Positions 28,190 to 58,755 of a DNA stretch of 64,000 nucleotides are shown here, one piece after another. Source of the stretch: Botryllus schlosseri (lineage: Eukaryota); the NCBI GenBank assembly GCA_051294905.1, contig CM119385.1, positions 2,790,001 through 2,854,000 of the forward strand, in the 5' to 3' direction. The position numbers and the translations under genes were made by a program. Under the pieces are notes generated by a model. It searched no databases, was not told where the DNA came from, and was given only the letters and a program-made list of their open reading frames with translations. The first letter of the stretch is position 1, and every line of letters starts with the position of its first letter.

Positions 28190-28800
28190 CTTGCTATATC
28201 TGTTGAACCAACGTCTATTTTGAGGGTCATGCCATATCATATACGTCGACTATACTGGGCGCACGTCGTCCGTACGCTGCTGCTACATGTTTTCCGAAAG
28301 TATTTAAACAATTATGGCATAATTATACAATTTTTAAAGGCATTTGTTCAAATCACGGTTGGTTTTGAATGCAGCCCTACATCGAACAAATAAGCTTATT
28401 GGTCACCTACATTAATGAATTATGAATTTATTTTGTTGAAGTTATTTCGTAGGAAAAGTATCTTCATTATGACTTCATCTAAATGAAATTATTCCTTAGG
28501 GCTACAGGGATGGAAAGAGGAATGACACGACAATGATAGCATACAGCATTGGCGAAACGGGATTTTGAACGTGCATTTAAGAAGGCCGAATCACGGAACA
28601 TGTAAAACAAGGAAATATACGGAATTATCCAAGATAAATTTCTGTATTACCAAAGATCGACCAAACTCTCATTTAGGGTATCTGATAAGTATTATAATCA
28701 CGTGTAATTGTAGCCGAGGAGAATGCGGGTACTCTGATTCCTCTTTATTCATTTATTTGTTGCAAATATCATTCGCTCTCGAATTGCCGAATTAAAAAGT
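28190..28800 (+). pseudogene. Family B copy (internally deleted)
   Basis: cgtag|GAAAAGTATCTTCA..GCATACAGCATTGGCGAAACGGGATTTTG..ATATACGGAATTATCCAAGAT and the following intron match 38200-38700 (-) and 52900-53314 (+). Confidence 0.65.
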
Positions 28801-37559: not shown

Positions 37560-40500
37560 ATGTTTCAGTAAATCGAATAGACGTCAATGATTGAAAACAG
37601 GCAGAAACAATCGGATGATGCTCGGATCAGAAAGGGTGAATTTTCTTCAGGTTCGTTCAAGCCGTAAAGTGATCGAAATCACAGGAATATTACAGGAACA
37701 AGCTGTTGCAGGTCATCATCGTTTTCAAAAATCTCCCGAACATCAGCTGGAATATAATAATCAAAAAGTATTAGAAGTAGTTTTAGTTAACAGGAGACAC
37801 ATTTTCTGCTAAATAGACACATTTTCTACTAAATAAAGAAGGAATAAATGAATACATTATTTTAAAAACCAAAGGTTCGAGTTACTAGCTAAAATATCGG
37901 TGTCACATTAAGTAAATATCCGTAAGCTGTAAAAAATGACATACCATTTCTACTAATTGCTTGACTTATTTTCAGTAAATTTTTACTTGACAAATTGAGC
38001 AAGTTCCTTTTCAGTGCAGGCTCGTCAGCGATATTCCAAAGAATCTTGCCATCTCGCGACAACCCGGAGCGTCTGTATAGGCACGGTCTTCGACGTGCAG
38101 ATTCTTCCCCCTTCTTTGCACTTAATGTCGTCAAGCGGTTCCGTATGCTACTCTGTTGAAAAGATATAGACTTGATAATATTTGGATACAAAACATGTTC
38201 TGCTACGCTTACAGTCACCGACTTTCAAGTCATCAATTGGAGAGCGAATCATATTTGCCACAAATAAATGAATAAAACAAATTAGAGTTCCTGCATATGC
38301 ATTGGTTACAATTACACATCAATAAAATAATTTCCATATACCTTAAATGTTTTTTTGTTCGAAGCTTGATAATACGGAAATATATCTTTGATAATTCCGT
38401 ATATGTCCTTGTTCCGCAAGTCCTGGCATTCGACCTTTTTGAAGGCAAGGTAGATGGCCACATCGAATTTTCTTGGGGGCTTGGGAGCCCTGTTGAGAGC
38501 TTCCTGCCACGCCGTTGTTCCAAGTTCGATGTGCAAAATCCCGTTCTCGCCAATGCTGTATGCGATCCTTGGCGTATAATTCCGTCTTCCCTTTCTGTTA
38601 CCGTATTGAATAACTTTATTTTGTTGAAGTCGTATCGATGTTACTTTTCCTTCGAAATTAGTTCAACAAGAAAAATGCAGAACTCAATAATATAAATGAC
38701 TAACAAGCTTATTCGTTCGATGCGTGGAAATCTATTTCTACTGTACCTGTTGTTCGATTGAGGCTGCATTTCACGTCGGATGCAATCCTCGTGAGTTCGT
38801 TCCGTGGCATCGATTCTCCGAAGTATTTCACGTAGAATGGCTTCGGAGTTGGGCCCCTCCTCAAGCTGAAGTATCTTCTGGCCCGTTTTTTATACTTCAT
38901 AAACATTGAATCGCATGCTGCTTGCGGGTGAGACCTGCATGGGAGAAGCAATATTACCCGGAATCAATATCACTAGTTGATGCTCAAATCTCACTTTTGG
39001 TTTGCCGATGTTAACATGAGCAGGTAACTGTTTTCCTCATTGCCTCGAATAATCTGAAAAACAATATACCTTCCTTCAGAAGACAATATTGAATTGTCCT
39101 ATATAATCGACGATAAGAACATATATGATGTGGTAATTATATCTTTGACATCTGTACATACATAGTCTGTTTTAGATTACAAAAGAACATTACCATTATT
39201 AATTTGGAGGCGACTAACATACGATACGGAGATTTATACAATCTATATGAAGGCGGTGTCAAAAGGTATTTATAATCTGCGGCGCTAATGATAACTCTGT
39301 AAGCACCGAAAGTATGAAGTATGACTTTTCTGTCCAAACGTGAAAGCGAAATGTATCTGAGTGGAATCGGCTTCATGCACAAACACCCTCAGTACACGTA
39401 TTACTGAAGCAAATGTTTTACAAAGGAATATTCCCTGTTTCATCGCAGTCACGAGACCAGGGGTTCTTAAACTTGGGGTCCACGGACCCCATAGTGGTTC
39501 GTATACTAGTATTAGCGGGTCCGTGAAAAGGCAGTACGTCATTAAGCAGCTATACAAACAGATTTTCTTTCGGTAACGATGTCGTGAGTAGGACTTTGAT
39601 ATATTGTCAAGTCTTATCTTAGCCATGAAATCACCGAAATACAGTTGACCTTGTTGCAATGACCCTTCTGTCATCGGTTTCTGAAATTTCGGAGGTACGC
39701 AGAACCGACCAGATAACCTGAAGTTCCGCTAGCAAAAAAGTTAAAGAACGCCTGAACAAGACTGACTAGAGGCGTCGACATCACGATTGCTCCGCATGCA
39801 GCATTGAAGGAATAATCTATTTTACCTATTTCTTCTGTGTGAACCATACATATTATTTGTTTCCAAGATCAAACACTTATCATTCGGTGTCCATCCCCAA
39901 TTTTATGGCTTGCGTTTCATTGAACAACTTCATCAAGTTCACACGAGTCCTTTCCACCTCCTGATTCTAATGCAATCTAGTTTTGTAACGGCTCAAATAT
40001 TGAATAACGAAAGGCAGGAAGCCTCGCAATTGTTTCTAACCCAGTTTAGAGATCAGCATGGCGCACTTATCTTTATTTGACTAGTCGCGCAGTTGACTGC
40101 ATATTTCCAAGTGCGACAGGCTATACTTTACACCCACCGAGACTCTTCGAAACAATTGAATCCCGTGATTGACCAAGCTCGATTTGAGCAAAATAAAGGA
40201 TTTCAATACCTAGCGTGTAGCTTATCTAAATAAAAAAGGGTTTTCTTACATGTCGGTACGCTCTTGATTTCGATTCACTACTGTTGGAACCTGATTAGCA
40301 GATTGCTGCCAGACAACAGGTGCTGCTTGCTCGCCGCTGAATTCCGGTCCCGCTCCTTGGTTTCCTGTAGGTAATGACAGAAATAATAGTAAGGTAAATC
40401 GGAGCGGCCAGGAAGATTGGATCGGGTAATGTTGACAGGACTATGAAAAATGTTCAAAGACAATCAATCAACAGGCCGATATATATCGGGACAGTAAATA

Positions 40501-52440: not shown

Positions 52441-53314
52441 TATGTGTCGTATGTTCTTCGTCCTCAAATTAATTTCAGTAATATTCTTTTGTAATCTAAC
52501 ACGGACAATATACGGATGTGAACCAGATCATATATGATCTTATCGTCGATTATATGCTACAATTCAGTATTGTTTTCTGAAGGAAAGTATCTTCTCATTC
52601 AGATTATTGGAGGCGATGAGGAAAACACTCGGAGAACAAGATGTGCGATTTGAACCTAAACCAGAAGTAACAGTTCCGGGTCATAATGATTTTCCGGCCA
52701 ATATGCGGTTTAACGTGTATGAAGTTTTACGCCCGGTCAGAGGATCCGTCGCCATCTGGAGATCCATCTAAAAGAAATACTCCGAAGAATGGACGCCACG
52801 GAACAAACTTACGAATAATGCATCCGTCGAGCAAGGCAGCCCAAATCAAACAAATGGTATTGTAGAAATAGGTTCCCACTCATCGAACGAATAAGCGTAT
52901 TGGTCATCTACATTACTGAATTCTGCATTAATTCTGCATTTTTTTCCTGTTTAACTAATATCGTAGGAAAAGTAACATCAATATGACTTCATAAAAATAA
53001 AATTATTCAATATGGTAACAGGGAAGGAAAGAGAAATTACACGGCAAGGCTCGCATATTGCATTGGCGAAGACGGGATTTTGAACGTGGAACTTGGTGGA
53101 TCAACGGTGTGGAAGGATGCTCTGAACAGTGCACCTAAGCCACCAAAAAATGACGTGGCGATAATACCTCGCATTTAAAATGGGTAATTTGCAGGATCTT
53201 GAAAACAAGGATATATACGGAATTATAGAAGATATATTTCCGTATTACCAAGGACCAAACAACGGACAATACAAACGGACAATACATGGTATATATTTCT
53301 ATATATACCATGTG
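52441..53314 (+). pseudogene. Family B copy
   Basis: LLEAMRKT..VRFE..MRFNVYEV..LKEILRRMDATE..RNRFPLIERIS and KVTSI*LHKNKIIQYGNREGKRNYTARLAYCIGEDGIL.. match 38342-39329 (-). Confidence 0.75.
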
Positions 53315-53594
53315 TTATTATATTCTTCATTCACAGTAAAACTGGTAAATACACTCATAATCAGGGAAGCAACCCGACCCCAAAGGAAAATGGCGAGATT
53401 TGAGTAGATTTTTAAAATTTCAGTAATACATTCAAATTGTTATCCTACGCAATACATGGAGAAGTCAGATTACAGAATTGCAGCAGATGAAGAATTGGCA
53501 AGGGTTACAGAGCAGAAGTAGAGATGATCGAAGAACAAGAATCGAAATTACACAAATTATGCTGTGATTCACAATGTAATTTTAGTCCACTGGT

Positions 53595-54130
53595 GCATTC
53601 AAGGCCTTCCGAAGAATGTGCACAGTGCCGAATAATGTGATCTTTTGGATCATGTCGAATCGAACGTTACCCGAAATTTGTTGGATATGTCTCATGAGTT
53701 TTTTGCTTATGACCCCGGCCAGTAGCGCCAACGACTATCGGAACAATGTTTATTTTGCATCGCCACATTTTCTCACATTCCATTAGAGATCTGCGTATTT
53801 GAAGTGTTTTTCTGATGTCTTTTGCAATATATTTAATGATCAGCTGGGACAGCCAGTTCAATGAATAAGCATTCTCTTTTTTTTAGTTTGACGATTATAT
53901 CCGGGTGGTTGCTCCTGATTTCGCGGTCAGTTATAACTGGTATACATCCCACAGAATTTTTACTTGTTCGTTTTCTGTCACTGGTGGTGGGCTGTAATCG
54001 TACCAATCTTTTGTCGAAGTGGTGATGTTAAAATGTTTGCATAATTCAAGATGAATGTAGTGACCAATCCTGTTGTGTCTCCATGTGTATTCGGTAGCTG
54101 CAACTGCAACGAGACAGGTGGGCGGAACAC
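53595..54130 (-). mobile_element. R4/Dong-type non-LTR fragment: CCHC tail plus restriction-like endonuclease
   Basis: HLSRC..TEYTWRHN.IGHYIH.ELCK, ENEQVKILWD, TDREIRSNHPDIIV, FIELAVP, KYADL, IVPIVVGATG, IQKITLFGTVHILRKAL across frameshifts. Confidence 0.85.
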
Positions 54131-54189
54131 TTACTCAATAGGTGACTGCGGTAACTCAATAGGTGGCTGCGGTAGTTATAACTAGTTAT

Positions 54190-56925
54190 AAGAGGTATTG
54201 ATGTCTAATATGAAAGGGCATTTCGTGGCATTCAGATTGCAGCGTGCAGATGGGTGTACTGCGCATGGCTCCACGGCAAAGGCGTATAGCCATGTTCTGC
54301 ATTCTGCGTATTTTTTCAACGTAGCGGTTTGGGGCGAAACCATAAGCTGGTAAGTGCGTAATCTGTTACTGAGCGAATGGTAGCTCCTGTTACTGAGCGA
54401 ATGGTAGCTCGGTATATAGGAAGGAGTGACTTTTTGGAGACACACCACGACGTTCCTGTAAGAAGTCGAAGAATACTCAGCCGCTTGGAGAACTTTGAAA
54501 TGATATGGTCGACGTGATGTTTGTAGGATCAGGATGTGTCGAAAACGACTCCAAGATATTTGTACGACTGAACGAATTGAAGCTCCACGCCGCCCACGCT
54601 GAGCGAGAGCGTACTGATTTTACGTTCCCGAGTGAACAAGATGGCGGCAGACTAACTCATCGATACGTTGAATCCCCATTTCGTACACCAATCATGCACG
54701 CGGTTCAGAGATGATTGCGTAGAAGTGAGAAGTGACTCGATGGGTATTCTGCTTTCCCACATCGCGAAATCGTCGGCAAAAAGTGCCTGCTGTTCGCACT
54801 GTACGCTCGACGGAAGGTCGTTGATCATGACATTAAATAAGAGGGGGCTAATTGTACTCTCTTGAGGAGTACCGTTTTCGAGAACATACTTGGATTATGT
54901 ACATCCTATCCTTACTCGAAAAGTCCTTTCTTCTAGAAAGGCTCGAATCCAAGAGAGCATTTTCCCGCATGTGCCTAGTGGCGACTATTTATACAATAGC
55001 CCGTTCCGCGATAGCATATCGTACGCACGTTCAATATCTAAAAACACCGCTATCACTGACCTTTGGCTGTTAATAGACTTATATACCGAGTCGTGTAGTC
55101 GCAAAATATGGTCCAGGGTATTTCTACCCTGTCTAAAACCGCATATCGAGTTGTCAAATAATCCGTTCCGTTTTTCTCTAGATACCATCTCAATCTACTC
55201 GCCACCATTGCTTCCATTACTTTGCAGATGTTACTTGTTGAGAAATTGGCCTGTACGATTCCGGTAATGCTGGGTCCTTTCCCGTTTTTAGTAAAGGGAT
55301 GACCGTTGTATTTTTCCATTCAGGTGGGATAGTACCCTGGTCCCAACTAGCATTATATAAAGAGAGAAGGTGGTTCAAGGCACCAGGGGAAAGATTTTTC
55401 AACATCGGCGCACATACCGTATCCACGCCGGGTGATGTGCTCCGGCGAGAATGTACGGCATCTTTCAGCTCGTCTATTGAAAAGGCGACGTTGTAATCCT
55501 TCTTGGCGTCGGTTTGAAACATTACCGCTTGCATCTCGTCCGCCTCGAAGTTTAATCGGAGTTGCGAGAAATTATCACTGTGATTCTCGTTACTGCTCAC
55601 CGTAGCAAAGTGAAGACCTAGCCGGTCCGCTTTCGATTTATCGTCGAGCATAGTCAAACTGTTTGGAGAAGACGAACTTTATGCGTCGTACGAGCTGCCC
55701 CCAGAAATTGACCGGATTACTCTCCAGACTTTTGATAGGATCGTTTTCCGATCCAATGTTCCGCAAAAGCTTTCCCAACTCACTCGTTTCGCTTGTAGAA
55801 TAGCTCTACGGCACTCCACTCGCATTTTTCTGAAGGATAGAATATCGTGAAGATTGAATGATATTTTCATTTTCACTCGCATTTTTCTTAAGGATAGAAT
55901 ATCGAGAAGATTGAATGATATTTTCATTTTCATGTATTTTCATGTTCATGTAAGCCACCCGTTTACGCCTGATCGCTCGGTTACAAAGATCGTTCCACCA
56001 GGTAACTGGTTTTTTACCGCAGTGTTTTGACCGAGGTATAGACCTTGACGCTGCTGATACGATCGCATGCCTGATACCCTCATTAGATCGTTCCACATCA
56101 TCGGGATAAGTGGATAAGATCTCGGAACCCACGAGTCCGGAAAAGCTATTCCAATCGGCTCTATTTAGATTCCACGAATCTATTGTCACTGAAGTTTTTA
56201 TTGTCCTAACTAACATTGTAAGAAGTGCGTACCACGAAATGATCACTTCCCAGCAATTGATCGGTAAAAGTCAAATTACATTTACTGGCAACATCCGGCG
56301 CAGTGATAGTAAGGTCCAGAATGGACCCCCGTGATCTGGCATTGGATGCGCAGAAGGGACCCCCGTGATCTGGCATTGGATGCTAAGTAAAGACGAGTAG
56401 GTACCGAGGTGTTCAAAAGCACGAGATTATGTTTTCCTATGACATCGTAAAGATGGATACCACGGTTGTTTGTTGTTGGGCCCCAAGATGAGTGGTGTGC
56501 GTTGAAGTCGCCGAACACGATATACTTTGAAGTTAACCCTTCAAGAAACTCCAGGTCACTTGGTTGCAGTTGATAGCTCGGGGATATGTATACGTTACAT
56601 AATTTCAGATCACCCGCCTGTACTGGGATGGCATCGATTTCTGGTGGAGTCCTAATTCGGTGACATGATGAATGCAACGAGTTTGTAACAAAGGTTGCTA
56701 CACCTCCCGAGTGCCCGAGTGCAGGGTTGGGTCTTTCCTATAGAGGGTATAGCCGTTGAATCGCTGAGTATATTCACTGATAAGGTGGGTTTCTTGAATC
56801 AGAATAATATCCGGTGGTGGTCGGAGAGTGGTAAGATAATGTTCAAATTCGGGTAGTTTCCTATAAATTCCACGACAGTTCCATTGTAAGAAAGATATCG
56901 CGGAAGAGCTCTTCAAGAGGTTCAT
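54190..56925 (-). pseudogene. LINE ORF2 (APE endonuclease + reverse transcriptase)
   Basis: FLQWNCRG, QETHL, GDFNAHH.SWG, WNLNRADW, SYRPIS, FLDIERAYD, PQES.ISPLLFNVMINDLP, LFADD motifs; frameshifted. Confidence 0.9.
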
Positions 56926-58397
56926 TGGGGTTCAATGGACATTCCAAGATACTTGGAGGAAGCTTCGCTAACGATGTTGAAAACATCATGATCACAAGAA
57001 CGACAAGTAGATATGGTAATGTTGACTATCTCGGCTATTAGCGCAATGGTAATGTTGACTATCTCGGCTATTAGCGCAAAAAGACGATCGGTGTCGAATT
57101 GCCCTGTACTATTCAAAGGATTTGCGCAGTTTGGCGTTTTCTTAACTGGTGTGTATTGCTGTTGATTGCTGTGTACGTGTCGGAGGTCACCATCGTTAAG
57201 AGCAGGATATGCCGCTTGGTATTTGGATCGCCATTTCCTACTCGTGCGCCGTGTATTCCGTGGTACTGAACCGACGGTCAGGCTTGGCATCGTATCATTC
57301 CCCAAAAGAACAACTTTCTCTGCGAACATTTCTTTTGCTTTTTCGAATGGCACATTGGTCTTTTCTTTTATTGCTAAGATTTTGGCTTCAGCCTTATCTA
57401 CGGGACATCCGCCATACGCTGTGACACTGAAGACAGTTAACACATTTTTTGTCGTTTTGGCATTGCTCATACTCGTGGTCTCGACTACCGCAATTTGTGC
57501 TGCATTTTTTTCCCACGACAGTTGTCGTTGGTGTGCCCGTAATGATTGCACTTGTAACAACGTAATGGCGGTGGTTTGTATGGCCTCCTCCGGAAAGATG
57601 AGTAACCAATCGATACAGAGCGGGGGTACTGTTCTGACTGGAAGTGGAGCAATAGAGACATTGTCTCCACCCTCTTACGTTCACTAGTCATTCTCTTACG
57701 TTCACTAGTCATTCTAGTGAGTCTTTTCACGGAGCTGACCCCGAATTCCGAGAGATCTTTGTTCAATTCATCATCAGTGAACTCTAGTGGAACACCAGAA
57801 ATAACGGCGCGAATGCCGTCAGATCGAGCGGGGTATGGTGACGCCCTGATTTCTATATTTGTTTTACCGTCAGTTATCAAGTTGCTGGTAACCAATTTGG
57901 TAACCTGCTTGCTGTTATTACAGGTTATTAATAAATCACCCGAAGGGAAAACCCGAATGGCTTTGTAGGGACCAATTGTTTTATGAAGCCAAGAATTTAT
58001 CACATTGGGACGATAGTGTTTGAGTTTCCTACCCTCGCCATTTGCGGATAGTACTACCTGTAACGAGGCAACTTTACGAGATTCATTATTGCTGCTAGAA
58101 CTCGGTGAGCTAGCGGTACTGCCTGAGTATGCGAGGTCACGAATAGATGGTGCGCTATATACAGGAACGGAAGGGATAACTTGGGATGTGGCACATATCA
58201 TCGGTTCAGTATTTGCGTCTATAGTATCCGCAACGTCATTCAATGGCACGGTATTGCTAATTTCTCCTGCCTACGGCAAATGATTTCGCCGCTACTTCTG
58301 CACGACCTGGTGAGTCATCACTATCATCGCCATCTGCTGAATTGAACGCTTCTGACGACACGCGCTTACCCGCAGAAGGCGACTTAATTGTGTCCAT
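56922..58397 (-). pseudogene. LINE ORF1 (gag-like nucleic-acid binding protein)
   Basis: PSGDLLI, RAVISGVP, RCYKCNHYGHTNDNC, NCGSRDH, CVNC knuckles; stops and frameshifts. Confidence 0.88.
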
Positions 58398-58592
58398 GAA
58401 CACTATCTACAGGCGGGAAGTAGTTTCTAAACAAGCCTATTATAGAGAACACCGTTGCTGCTTAAACGACCGAGTCCAGCGTACTGTTAACCTGCCAGAA
58501 TTCGTTGATTAGCTCGAGCTACTCTGGAGACGACCGTTCGCGACGACGCCTAATCACGAATGGTACTCATGTGTAATTGTAATCAATGCGTA

Positions 58593-58755
58593 CACTGTAA
58601 ATCTAAAAGGTGGAGATTTCCTCCATTAAAAGTGGTTCACGCTTTTGACCATTTATGGTGGAATGAAAATCCACCCCCATCATGGTGGAAATACCTTCCT
58701 CCCTATAAGGGGGAATACCTTCCTCCCTATATGGGGGAATACCCTCCACCCCAAC
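58593..58755. mobile_element. CACTG terminus of a CMC element (carrying family A copy 3); partner end outside window
   Basis: TA|CACTGTAAA followed by five GGTGGA/GGGGAATACC..CC subterminal repeats; lies downstream of the last exon of copy 3. Confidence 0.65.

Follow-up and report, generated by a model that had tools for sequence, protein, structure and literature searches.

A stated trait of I-group long interspersed nuclear elements (LINEs) is RNase H, and the order apurinic/apyrimidinic-like endonuclease (APE), reverse transcriptase (RT), RNase H is found in Ingi, I, Nimb, Loa, R1, and Tad1 (PMC4640811). LINEs of the R4/Dong kind carry just one open reading frame (ORF) with an RT and a C-terminal restriction-like endonuclease (RLE) and no APE. 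The RLE of LINEs is marked by an RH motif where the first helix begins, a PD-(D/E) core, a catalytic lysine shifted into KX2KY, and a CX2-3CX7-8HX4C knuckle upstream (PMC5678591). For Dong elements, insertion into microsatellites has been reported (PMC3636483). In Dualen/RandI, APE, RT, and RLE follow one another on one strand; this arrangement is common to the whole family, is in frame, and also comprises RNase H and the knuckle. Chimeras of the template-switch kind have also been documented for other LINEs (PMC2104539, PMC13174262). Here, we analyzed a 64,000-nucleotide stretch of Botryllus schlosseri DNA (GenBank assembly GCA_051294905.1, contig CM119385.1, positions 2,790,001 to 2,854,000; hereafter the window), in which a reading made from the sequence alone had proposed, on the minus strand, an I-type APE-RT body joined to an R4-type RLE tail within one target-site duplication (TSD). 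Such a composite is real: minus-strand 58562-53315 is one dead composite of two unrelated retrotransposons of the non-LTR kind (lacking long terminal repeats), the front ~4.5 kb being an I-type LINE and the last ~0.8 kb an unrelated and very abundant Dong/R2-type LINE. It joins known kinds of LINE and is in that sense ordinary, a one-off, non-functional join. The element is heavily decayed, with many stops, frameshifts, and short tandem duplications, and a blastn comparison within the window located neither part a second time.

We examined the two parts separately. On the minus strand, Pfam detected APE pieces at 56931-56209 (Exo_endo_phos_2, E 1e-11) and RT pieces at 55194-54655 (RVT_1, E 5e-8), and colinear tblastn matches agreed that the APE lies N-terminal to the RT in ORF2 of the body. 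These pieces and their colinearity with APE-RT-RNase H proteins bear out the APE and RT that the sequence-only reading had placed here, and its ORF1 shows a weak RRM-like match and CCHC knuckles. An exhaustive HMMER search with the piece at the RT start (55678-55220) gave 7351 relatives, and lengths of ~1220-1260 aa were common among the best 150. The nearest shared 35-45% identity with the body over the RT start, and all seven full-length relatives that were scanned had the order APE-RT-RNase H. By tblastn, six relatives were colinear with the element from residue ~3 to residue ~870-880 of ~1250, ending at window positions 54189-54204, and the remaining ~370 residues (linker, RNase H, and C-terminal zinc knuckle) had no counterpart in the body, which ends ~30 codons past the RT thumb. 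The window copy resembles I-group LINEs in the order of its parts, with APE and RT following an ORF1 that bears CCHC knuckles, and is unlike them in having neither RNase H nor the C-terminal zinc knuckle. Because all seven scanned relatives carry RNase H, we read its absence downstream of the RT in this copy as truncation and not as a family trait. An RLE-like tail was found in none of the best 150 RT relatives. Judged by the architecture of its nearest relatives, the body is an I-group LINE minus its 3' third; the assignment is to the group, within which I and Nimb would be candidate clades.

The tail presented the RLE motifs in the order and spacing of R4/Dong and other R2-superfamily RLE LINEs (R2, NeSL, HERO, CRE, Utopia). 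RHN lies at 54080-54072, PD within 53907-53896 (HPD at 53907), FIELAV at 53865-53848 with its acidic residue 14 positions past PD (PD-x13-E spacing), and KHFKY, matching KX2KY, at 53809-53795; the motifs occurred jointly in this order in 10 of 20,000 shuffles. The tail was colinear with R2-superfamily proteins in blastx over 54107-53609 (E down to 1e-18), and five in-frame pieces of it stood in register with 25 relatives (alignment A1), in agreement with the PD-(D/E)xK-type endonuclease that had been suggested for this region. The reading frame closes with a stop codon at 53584-53582, followed by a 3' untranslated region (UTR) of ~267 nt and the element end ..AATATAATAA at 53315.

Several searches with the broken tail itself were negative. 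The five stop-free pieces downstream of 54134 had no Pfam match at E ≤ 10, a PDB sequence search with two single pieces returned nothing, and a word-indexed protein search with a 67-aa piece gave no candidate within its length range. Neither the tail pieces nor the DNA pattern KILWD-N39-PDI matched viral contigs. The sole match of the tail pieces among metagenome contigs, a bacterial ORF (L001) that shares WYDYSPPPV, was rejected as a chance match. Intact relatives were reached with the degenerate DNA pattern of the window's own motifs (KILWD, 39 bases, PDI), which located them in the GTDB contigs L003, L005, and L008; a protein search from one GTDB relative then yielded P0151-P0181, and full-length members, 1008-1216 aa long, came from a look-up of clusters, among them a protein of the sponge Dysidea avara. 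The three contigs belong to metagenome-assembled genomes (MAGs) of bacterial and archaeal sponge symbionts, labeled Candidatus Poribacteria (L003) and Nitrosopumilaceae (L005 and L008, 932 and 778 kb), and hold eukaryotic RLE-LINE copies. This LINE DNA is probably sponge host DNA binned with symbionts, its protein falling in the same 90% cluster as that of Dysidea avara.

Five full-length tail relatives of 1008-1216 aa (four of them 1140-1216 aa) consisted of RVT_1, the zf-RVT knuckle, and the tail, and no Exo_endo_phos match at E ≤ 0.1 was found in the 309-515 residues upstream of their RT. This is the single-ORF layout of R4/Dong, of which the window copy keeps the C-terminus only. The best solved-structure matches of the relatives were the R2 retrotransposon proteins 9nl2, 9nl3, 9dou, and 8gh6, in alignments spanning the CX2C..HX4C knuckle and RHN. 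We also folded the tail of the intact L003 relative as a proxy for the broken window tail. The top seven PDB matches of this predicted structure (pLDDT, the model's confidence score, 84.8) were R2 proteins, with E values from 8e-11 to 2.5e-6, and cap-snatching PD-(D/E)xK nucleases came after them. Relatives of the tail thus share with R2-superfamily RLE LINEs a CX2CX8HX4C knuckle just upstream, an R2-like fold, and the lack of an APE; microsatellite tails and head-to-tail stacking were seen among them as well. On the strength of these likenesses, the tail is best assigned as the C-terminal RLE of an R2-superfamily LINE; the Dong/R4 clade would fit, from the (TAA)n tail and the tail-targeting behavior described below rather than from an RT tree.

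A CCHC motif had also been ascribed to the tail. We found no CX2-3CX7-8HX4C knuckle in any frame of 54400-53900, and the string KCSAHLSRC (54129-54106) is covered by body-family contigs and belongs to the I-type body. The tail begins two residues past the last cysteine of the knuckle, and what this copy keeps of the RLE element is the final ~175 codons together with the 3' UTR. In other tail copies, the 30-letter consensus upstream of this point reads ..ETVAHLMSGC. Since the tail relatives have the knuckle and the tail family's own upstream sequence reads so, it was lost from this copy at the junction. A protein likeness across the junction (SAHLSRC versus VAHLMSGC) was considered and set aside, as it was not significant at the DNA level, where 2680 of 5000 shuffles scored as well.

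To locate the junction, we aligned contigs of four public sequencing runs from three organisms to 53200-58700 at ≥80% likeness. These data are contigs, and they neither bridge the junction nor reveal whether a few further copies share the join. In run X1, the summed contig depth was ~1e5 over 53384-54119 and ~200 over 54120-58535, falling ~500-fold at 54108-54120, and the error-free contigs of the locus itself had a depth of ~50-66. The tail family thus has roughly thousands of copies as against a handful for the body (roughly 3-8 copy equivalents), a difference of ~500-fold in the sequencing runs of this species. Tail-family contigs matched the window through 54108 and then diverged from it; body-family contigs (X5 record 11 and X9 record 24) matched to 54106 and then continued for 21 and 155 letters unlike the window. 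Contigs of both families therefore place the junction at a three-base overlap, TGC, and not across the ~80 bp over which the sequence-only reading had spread it; beyond TGC, there is no wider similarity between the two sides. No other copy with the same junction, a search for which had been suggested, was seen in the contigs of the four runs, which cannot show a few further sharers. Because contigs ran unbroken over both 53315-53574 and 53554-54108, the 3' UTR belongs with the RLE and not with the I-type family, which answers the earlier question of where 53315-53595 belongs. The divergence from the closest contigs was alike for body and tail, at ~4-6%.

We then asked whether the two reading frames run through the join. 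The RT and RLE frames are in phase in the present coordinates only; with the 21-bp and 8-10-bp duplications private to this copy taken out, they differ by 1-2, and in-frame stops lie between the RT part and the RLE part. The join therefore seems to be out of frame, on the assumption that the duplications postdate it. Body copies elsewhere lack the 21-, 8-, 24-, 33-, and 34-bp tandem duplications of the window copy. The short duplications at 54133-54191, which had been taken for features of the junction, are private to this copy and part of a pattern that runs throughout it.

We also observed at least nine near-perfect short tandem duplications, with units of 10-57 bp, in the window copy and its flanks. 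Those in the element are at 54133-54174, 54173-54191, 54363-54410, 55817-55932, 56317-56383, 57013-57079, and 57672-57715, and those in the flanks at 53261-53286 and 58690-58751; at least the six that contigs cover are missing from the family's other copies. This suggests a strong tendency to small tandem duplication, local or genome-wide. In runs X5 and X7, labeled as two other organisms, both LINE families were present at only ~4-6% divergence, which implies closely related species or recent shared activity.

Next, we compared the flanks of the element. On the plus strand, TACCATGTG (53306-53314) and TACTCATGTG (58564-58573) form a 9-10 bp TSD around the whole unit, with a match quality reached in 0.3% of equally spaced control pairs derived from the window. 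Two paralogous empty sites in the window hold the motif once, with the left flank running straight into the right flank: ..ATTGATGTG|TAATTGTA near 38316 and ..AATCACGTG|TAATTGTA near 28703. The single, decayed TSD of the sequence-only reading was thus confirmed, its length being 9-10 bp and not the ~11 bp given there. Because the paralogous empty sites lack a TAA repeat, the pre-insertion target was not one, and such a target fits an APE-type first insertion that brought a TAA tail along. The flanks (52444-53252 and 58569-58606), named a "family B intron" in the sequence-only reading, are themselves a repeated unit, with diverged paralogues at 38282-39227 and 28380-28664 of 71-85% identity.

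The 3' end of the window copy, (TAA)2, adjoins this non-TAA TSD. Other tail copies continue into TAATAATAA, and the relative in L003 ends in (TAA)5. In X9 contigs, the 3' end of one tail copy (53316-53319) was joined to the 5'-truncated start of another. On the minus strand of L008 (4900-7500), three 5'-truncated RLE LINE copies stand head to tail, each beginning directly after the (TAG)n tail of the previous one. Landing in the microsatellite tails of other retroposons seems to be habitual for the RLE family and its relatives.

Table 1. Features of the composite element and its flanking duplication, in window coordinates
Feature	Position	Strand	Basis or remark
5' TSD copy	58564..58573	minus	minus-strand letters CACATGAGTA; base 58563 separates the TSD copy from the element start
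5' UTR of the I-group LINE body, beginning CATTCG	58397..58562	minus	5' end apparently complete
ORF1, frameshift near 58265; weak RRM-like part and CCHC knuckles	57485..58396	minus	Pfam
APE endonuclease domain in three frame-shifted pieces	56209..56931	minus	Pfam Exo_endo_phos / Exo_endo_phos_2; tblastn
Linker and RT through the thumb (..HEMPFHIRHQYLL); many stops and frameshifts	54189..55888	minus	Pfam RVT_1; I-group colinearity
Final part of the I-type body, not followed by RNase H; tandem duplications of 21 bp and 8-10 bp private to this copy	54106..54188	minus	contigs
Junction, three-base overlap TGC, matched by contigs of both families	54106..54108	minus	contigs
C-terminal RLE domain of an R2-superfamily (Dong/R4-like) LINE; four frame breaks; RH, PD, E, KX2KY	53582..54108	minus	alignment, motifs, fold and PDB matches of relatives
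3' UTR of the RLE family ending (TAA)2; other copies continue into more TAA units	53315..53581	minus	contigs
3' TSD copy	53306..53314	minus	minus-strand letters CACATGGTA

How the two parts came together can be told in more than one way. We favor, at about an even chance of being right, a nested insertion, in which a complete I-type copy received a Dong-type element in its (TAA)n tail, combined with a deletion. An I-group LINE with ORF1 and APE-RT is present from its apparent 5' end, and the 9-10 bp TSD is typical of APE-type insertion. This I-type copy would once have been complete and have ended in a short (TAA)n tail, in which a member of the abundant Dong/R4-like RLE family, targeting such microsatellite tails, would have landed. 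One deletion, during the RLE insertion (as a target-site deletion) or later, would then have taken the RNase H region and 3' UTR of the I-type element, the TAA units lying upstream, and the RLE element's 5' portion, and the ends would have joined at the three-base microhomology TGC (54106-54108). The outcome would be an RLE tail attached, out of frame, to an I-type body, the whole enclosed by the TSD that the I-type element had made. Every step of this nested route uses canonical specificities, and the route gains weight because the RLE family and its relatives seem to land habitually in retroposon microsatellite tails. Several observations weigh against it. The native 3' end of the I-type family was never seen, and its (TAA)n tail is assumed; the 3' ends of the I-group relatives L012-L014, checked for a TAA tail, lay on contigs that end too early or were uninformative. 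Only two TAA units stand between the RLE 3' UTR and the TSD, fewer than in most copies of the family, and tblastn showed no other deletion >50 bp in the 4.4-kb body. The like divergence of body and tail would also fit one simultaneous event, and a template switch would explain the microhomology and the two truncated partners just as well.

Such a switch, within one retrotransposition, would have RT start at the target nick, with the 3' end of a Dong-type RNA as its template, and copy ~0.8 kb. The enzyme would then jump, by way of the three-base microhomology, into an I-type mRNA, either at an internal point or where its 3' end was broken, and run to the 5' end of that mRNA, and the product would be integrated with one TSD. 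R2-type RTs readily jump templates in vitro. We hold this route to be credible, at somewhat less than an even chance. It would account for the single TSD around the whole unit and the single motif at the empty-site paralogues, for an I-type part that apparently reaches its own 5' end, as expected at run-off of the second template, for microhomology amid no wider similarity, for the like distance of body and tail from the contigs closest to each, and for a short TAA tail at a non-TAA target. Known template-switch chimeric retrocopies (U6-L1, MINE in Magnaporthe, and 5' switching in plant RTE LINEs) likewise consist of a 5'-truncated LINE 3' end and a foreign RNA extending as far as that RNA's 5' end, within one TSD and with short microhomology at the join. 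They differ from the element studied here, in which the acceptor would be the mRNA of another LINE joined internally and the target misfits the site preference of the donor. The non-TAA target would demand either off-target Dong-type machinery or trans-priming by low-copy I-type machinery, both non-canonical. The acceptor RNA would moreover have come from the low-copy body family rather than from the thousands of tail copies, and no feature of the sequence is specific to this route. More tentatively, a single round of target-primed reverse transcription (TPRT) with a jump from Dong-type (RLE) RNA to I-type (APE) mRNA may be possible as a natural cross-superfamily switch that put APE, RT, and RLE on one DNA copy. 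The window holds no feature by which to tell the template switch from the nested insertion with deletion; both had been raised by the sequence-only reading, and the nested alternative is the one to have gained weight, from the tail-landing habit. That reading had also considered a dual-endonuclease lineage, a genuine lineage or small family of APE and RLE LINEs like Dualen/RandI with the window copy as a decayed member, which we regard as very improbable. The three domains do share one orientation within one TSD, as in the Dualen/RandI order; the RT and RLE frames are in phase in the present coordinates, and the contig data are compatible with a few more copies sharing the junction. However, the junction is where the contigs of either parent family part from the window, none of the 150 RT relatives has the tail, and an APE is absent from the relatives of the tail. 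Also missing is the knuckle found ahead of every LINE RLE (PMC5678591), in-frame stops separate the parts, the phase is off once the private duplications are removed, and RNase H, found in both Dualen/RandI and the I group, is absent. What Dualen/RandI have as a family-wide architecture is here a one-off join, probably out of frame and knuckle-less, of separately existing families. An assembly artifact, in which the low-copy LINE body was mis-joined to a high-copy repeat, seems to us the least probable origin, hardly to be expected at all. The join does fall exactly at the border between low-copy and very-high-copy sequence, and no listed contig was shown to bridge it. However, at its far end the high-copy part adjoins the TSD copy that matches, and the flanking repeat unit continues correctly from there, as seen in two paralogues; a mis-join would not reproduce this, and assemblers do not join by a three-base overlap.

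Overall, the copy-number profiles, the architectures of the relatives, and the empty-site paralogues show the element to be an accidental, non-functional composite, and it carries a caution, as two endonuclease types on one strand within one TSD mimicked a new LINE architecture. The locus documents, in an ascidian genome, an abundant RLE LINE that apparently targets microsatellite tails and uses the tails of other retroposons as landing pads. If the template switch is true, it would be a small natural example of how the shuffling of LINE domains across superfamilies can begin, and it is from a cross-superfamily switch of this kind that lineages with two endonucleases, Dualen/RandI among them, could have arisen.

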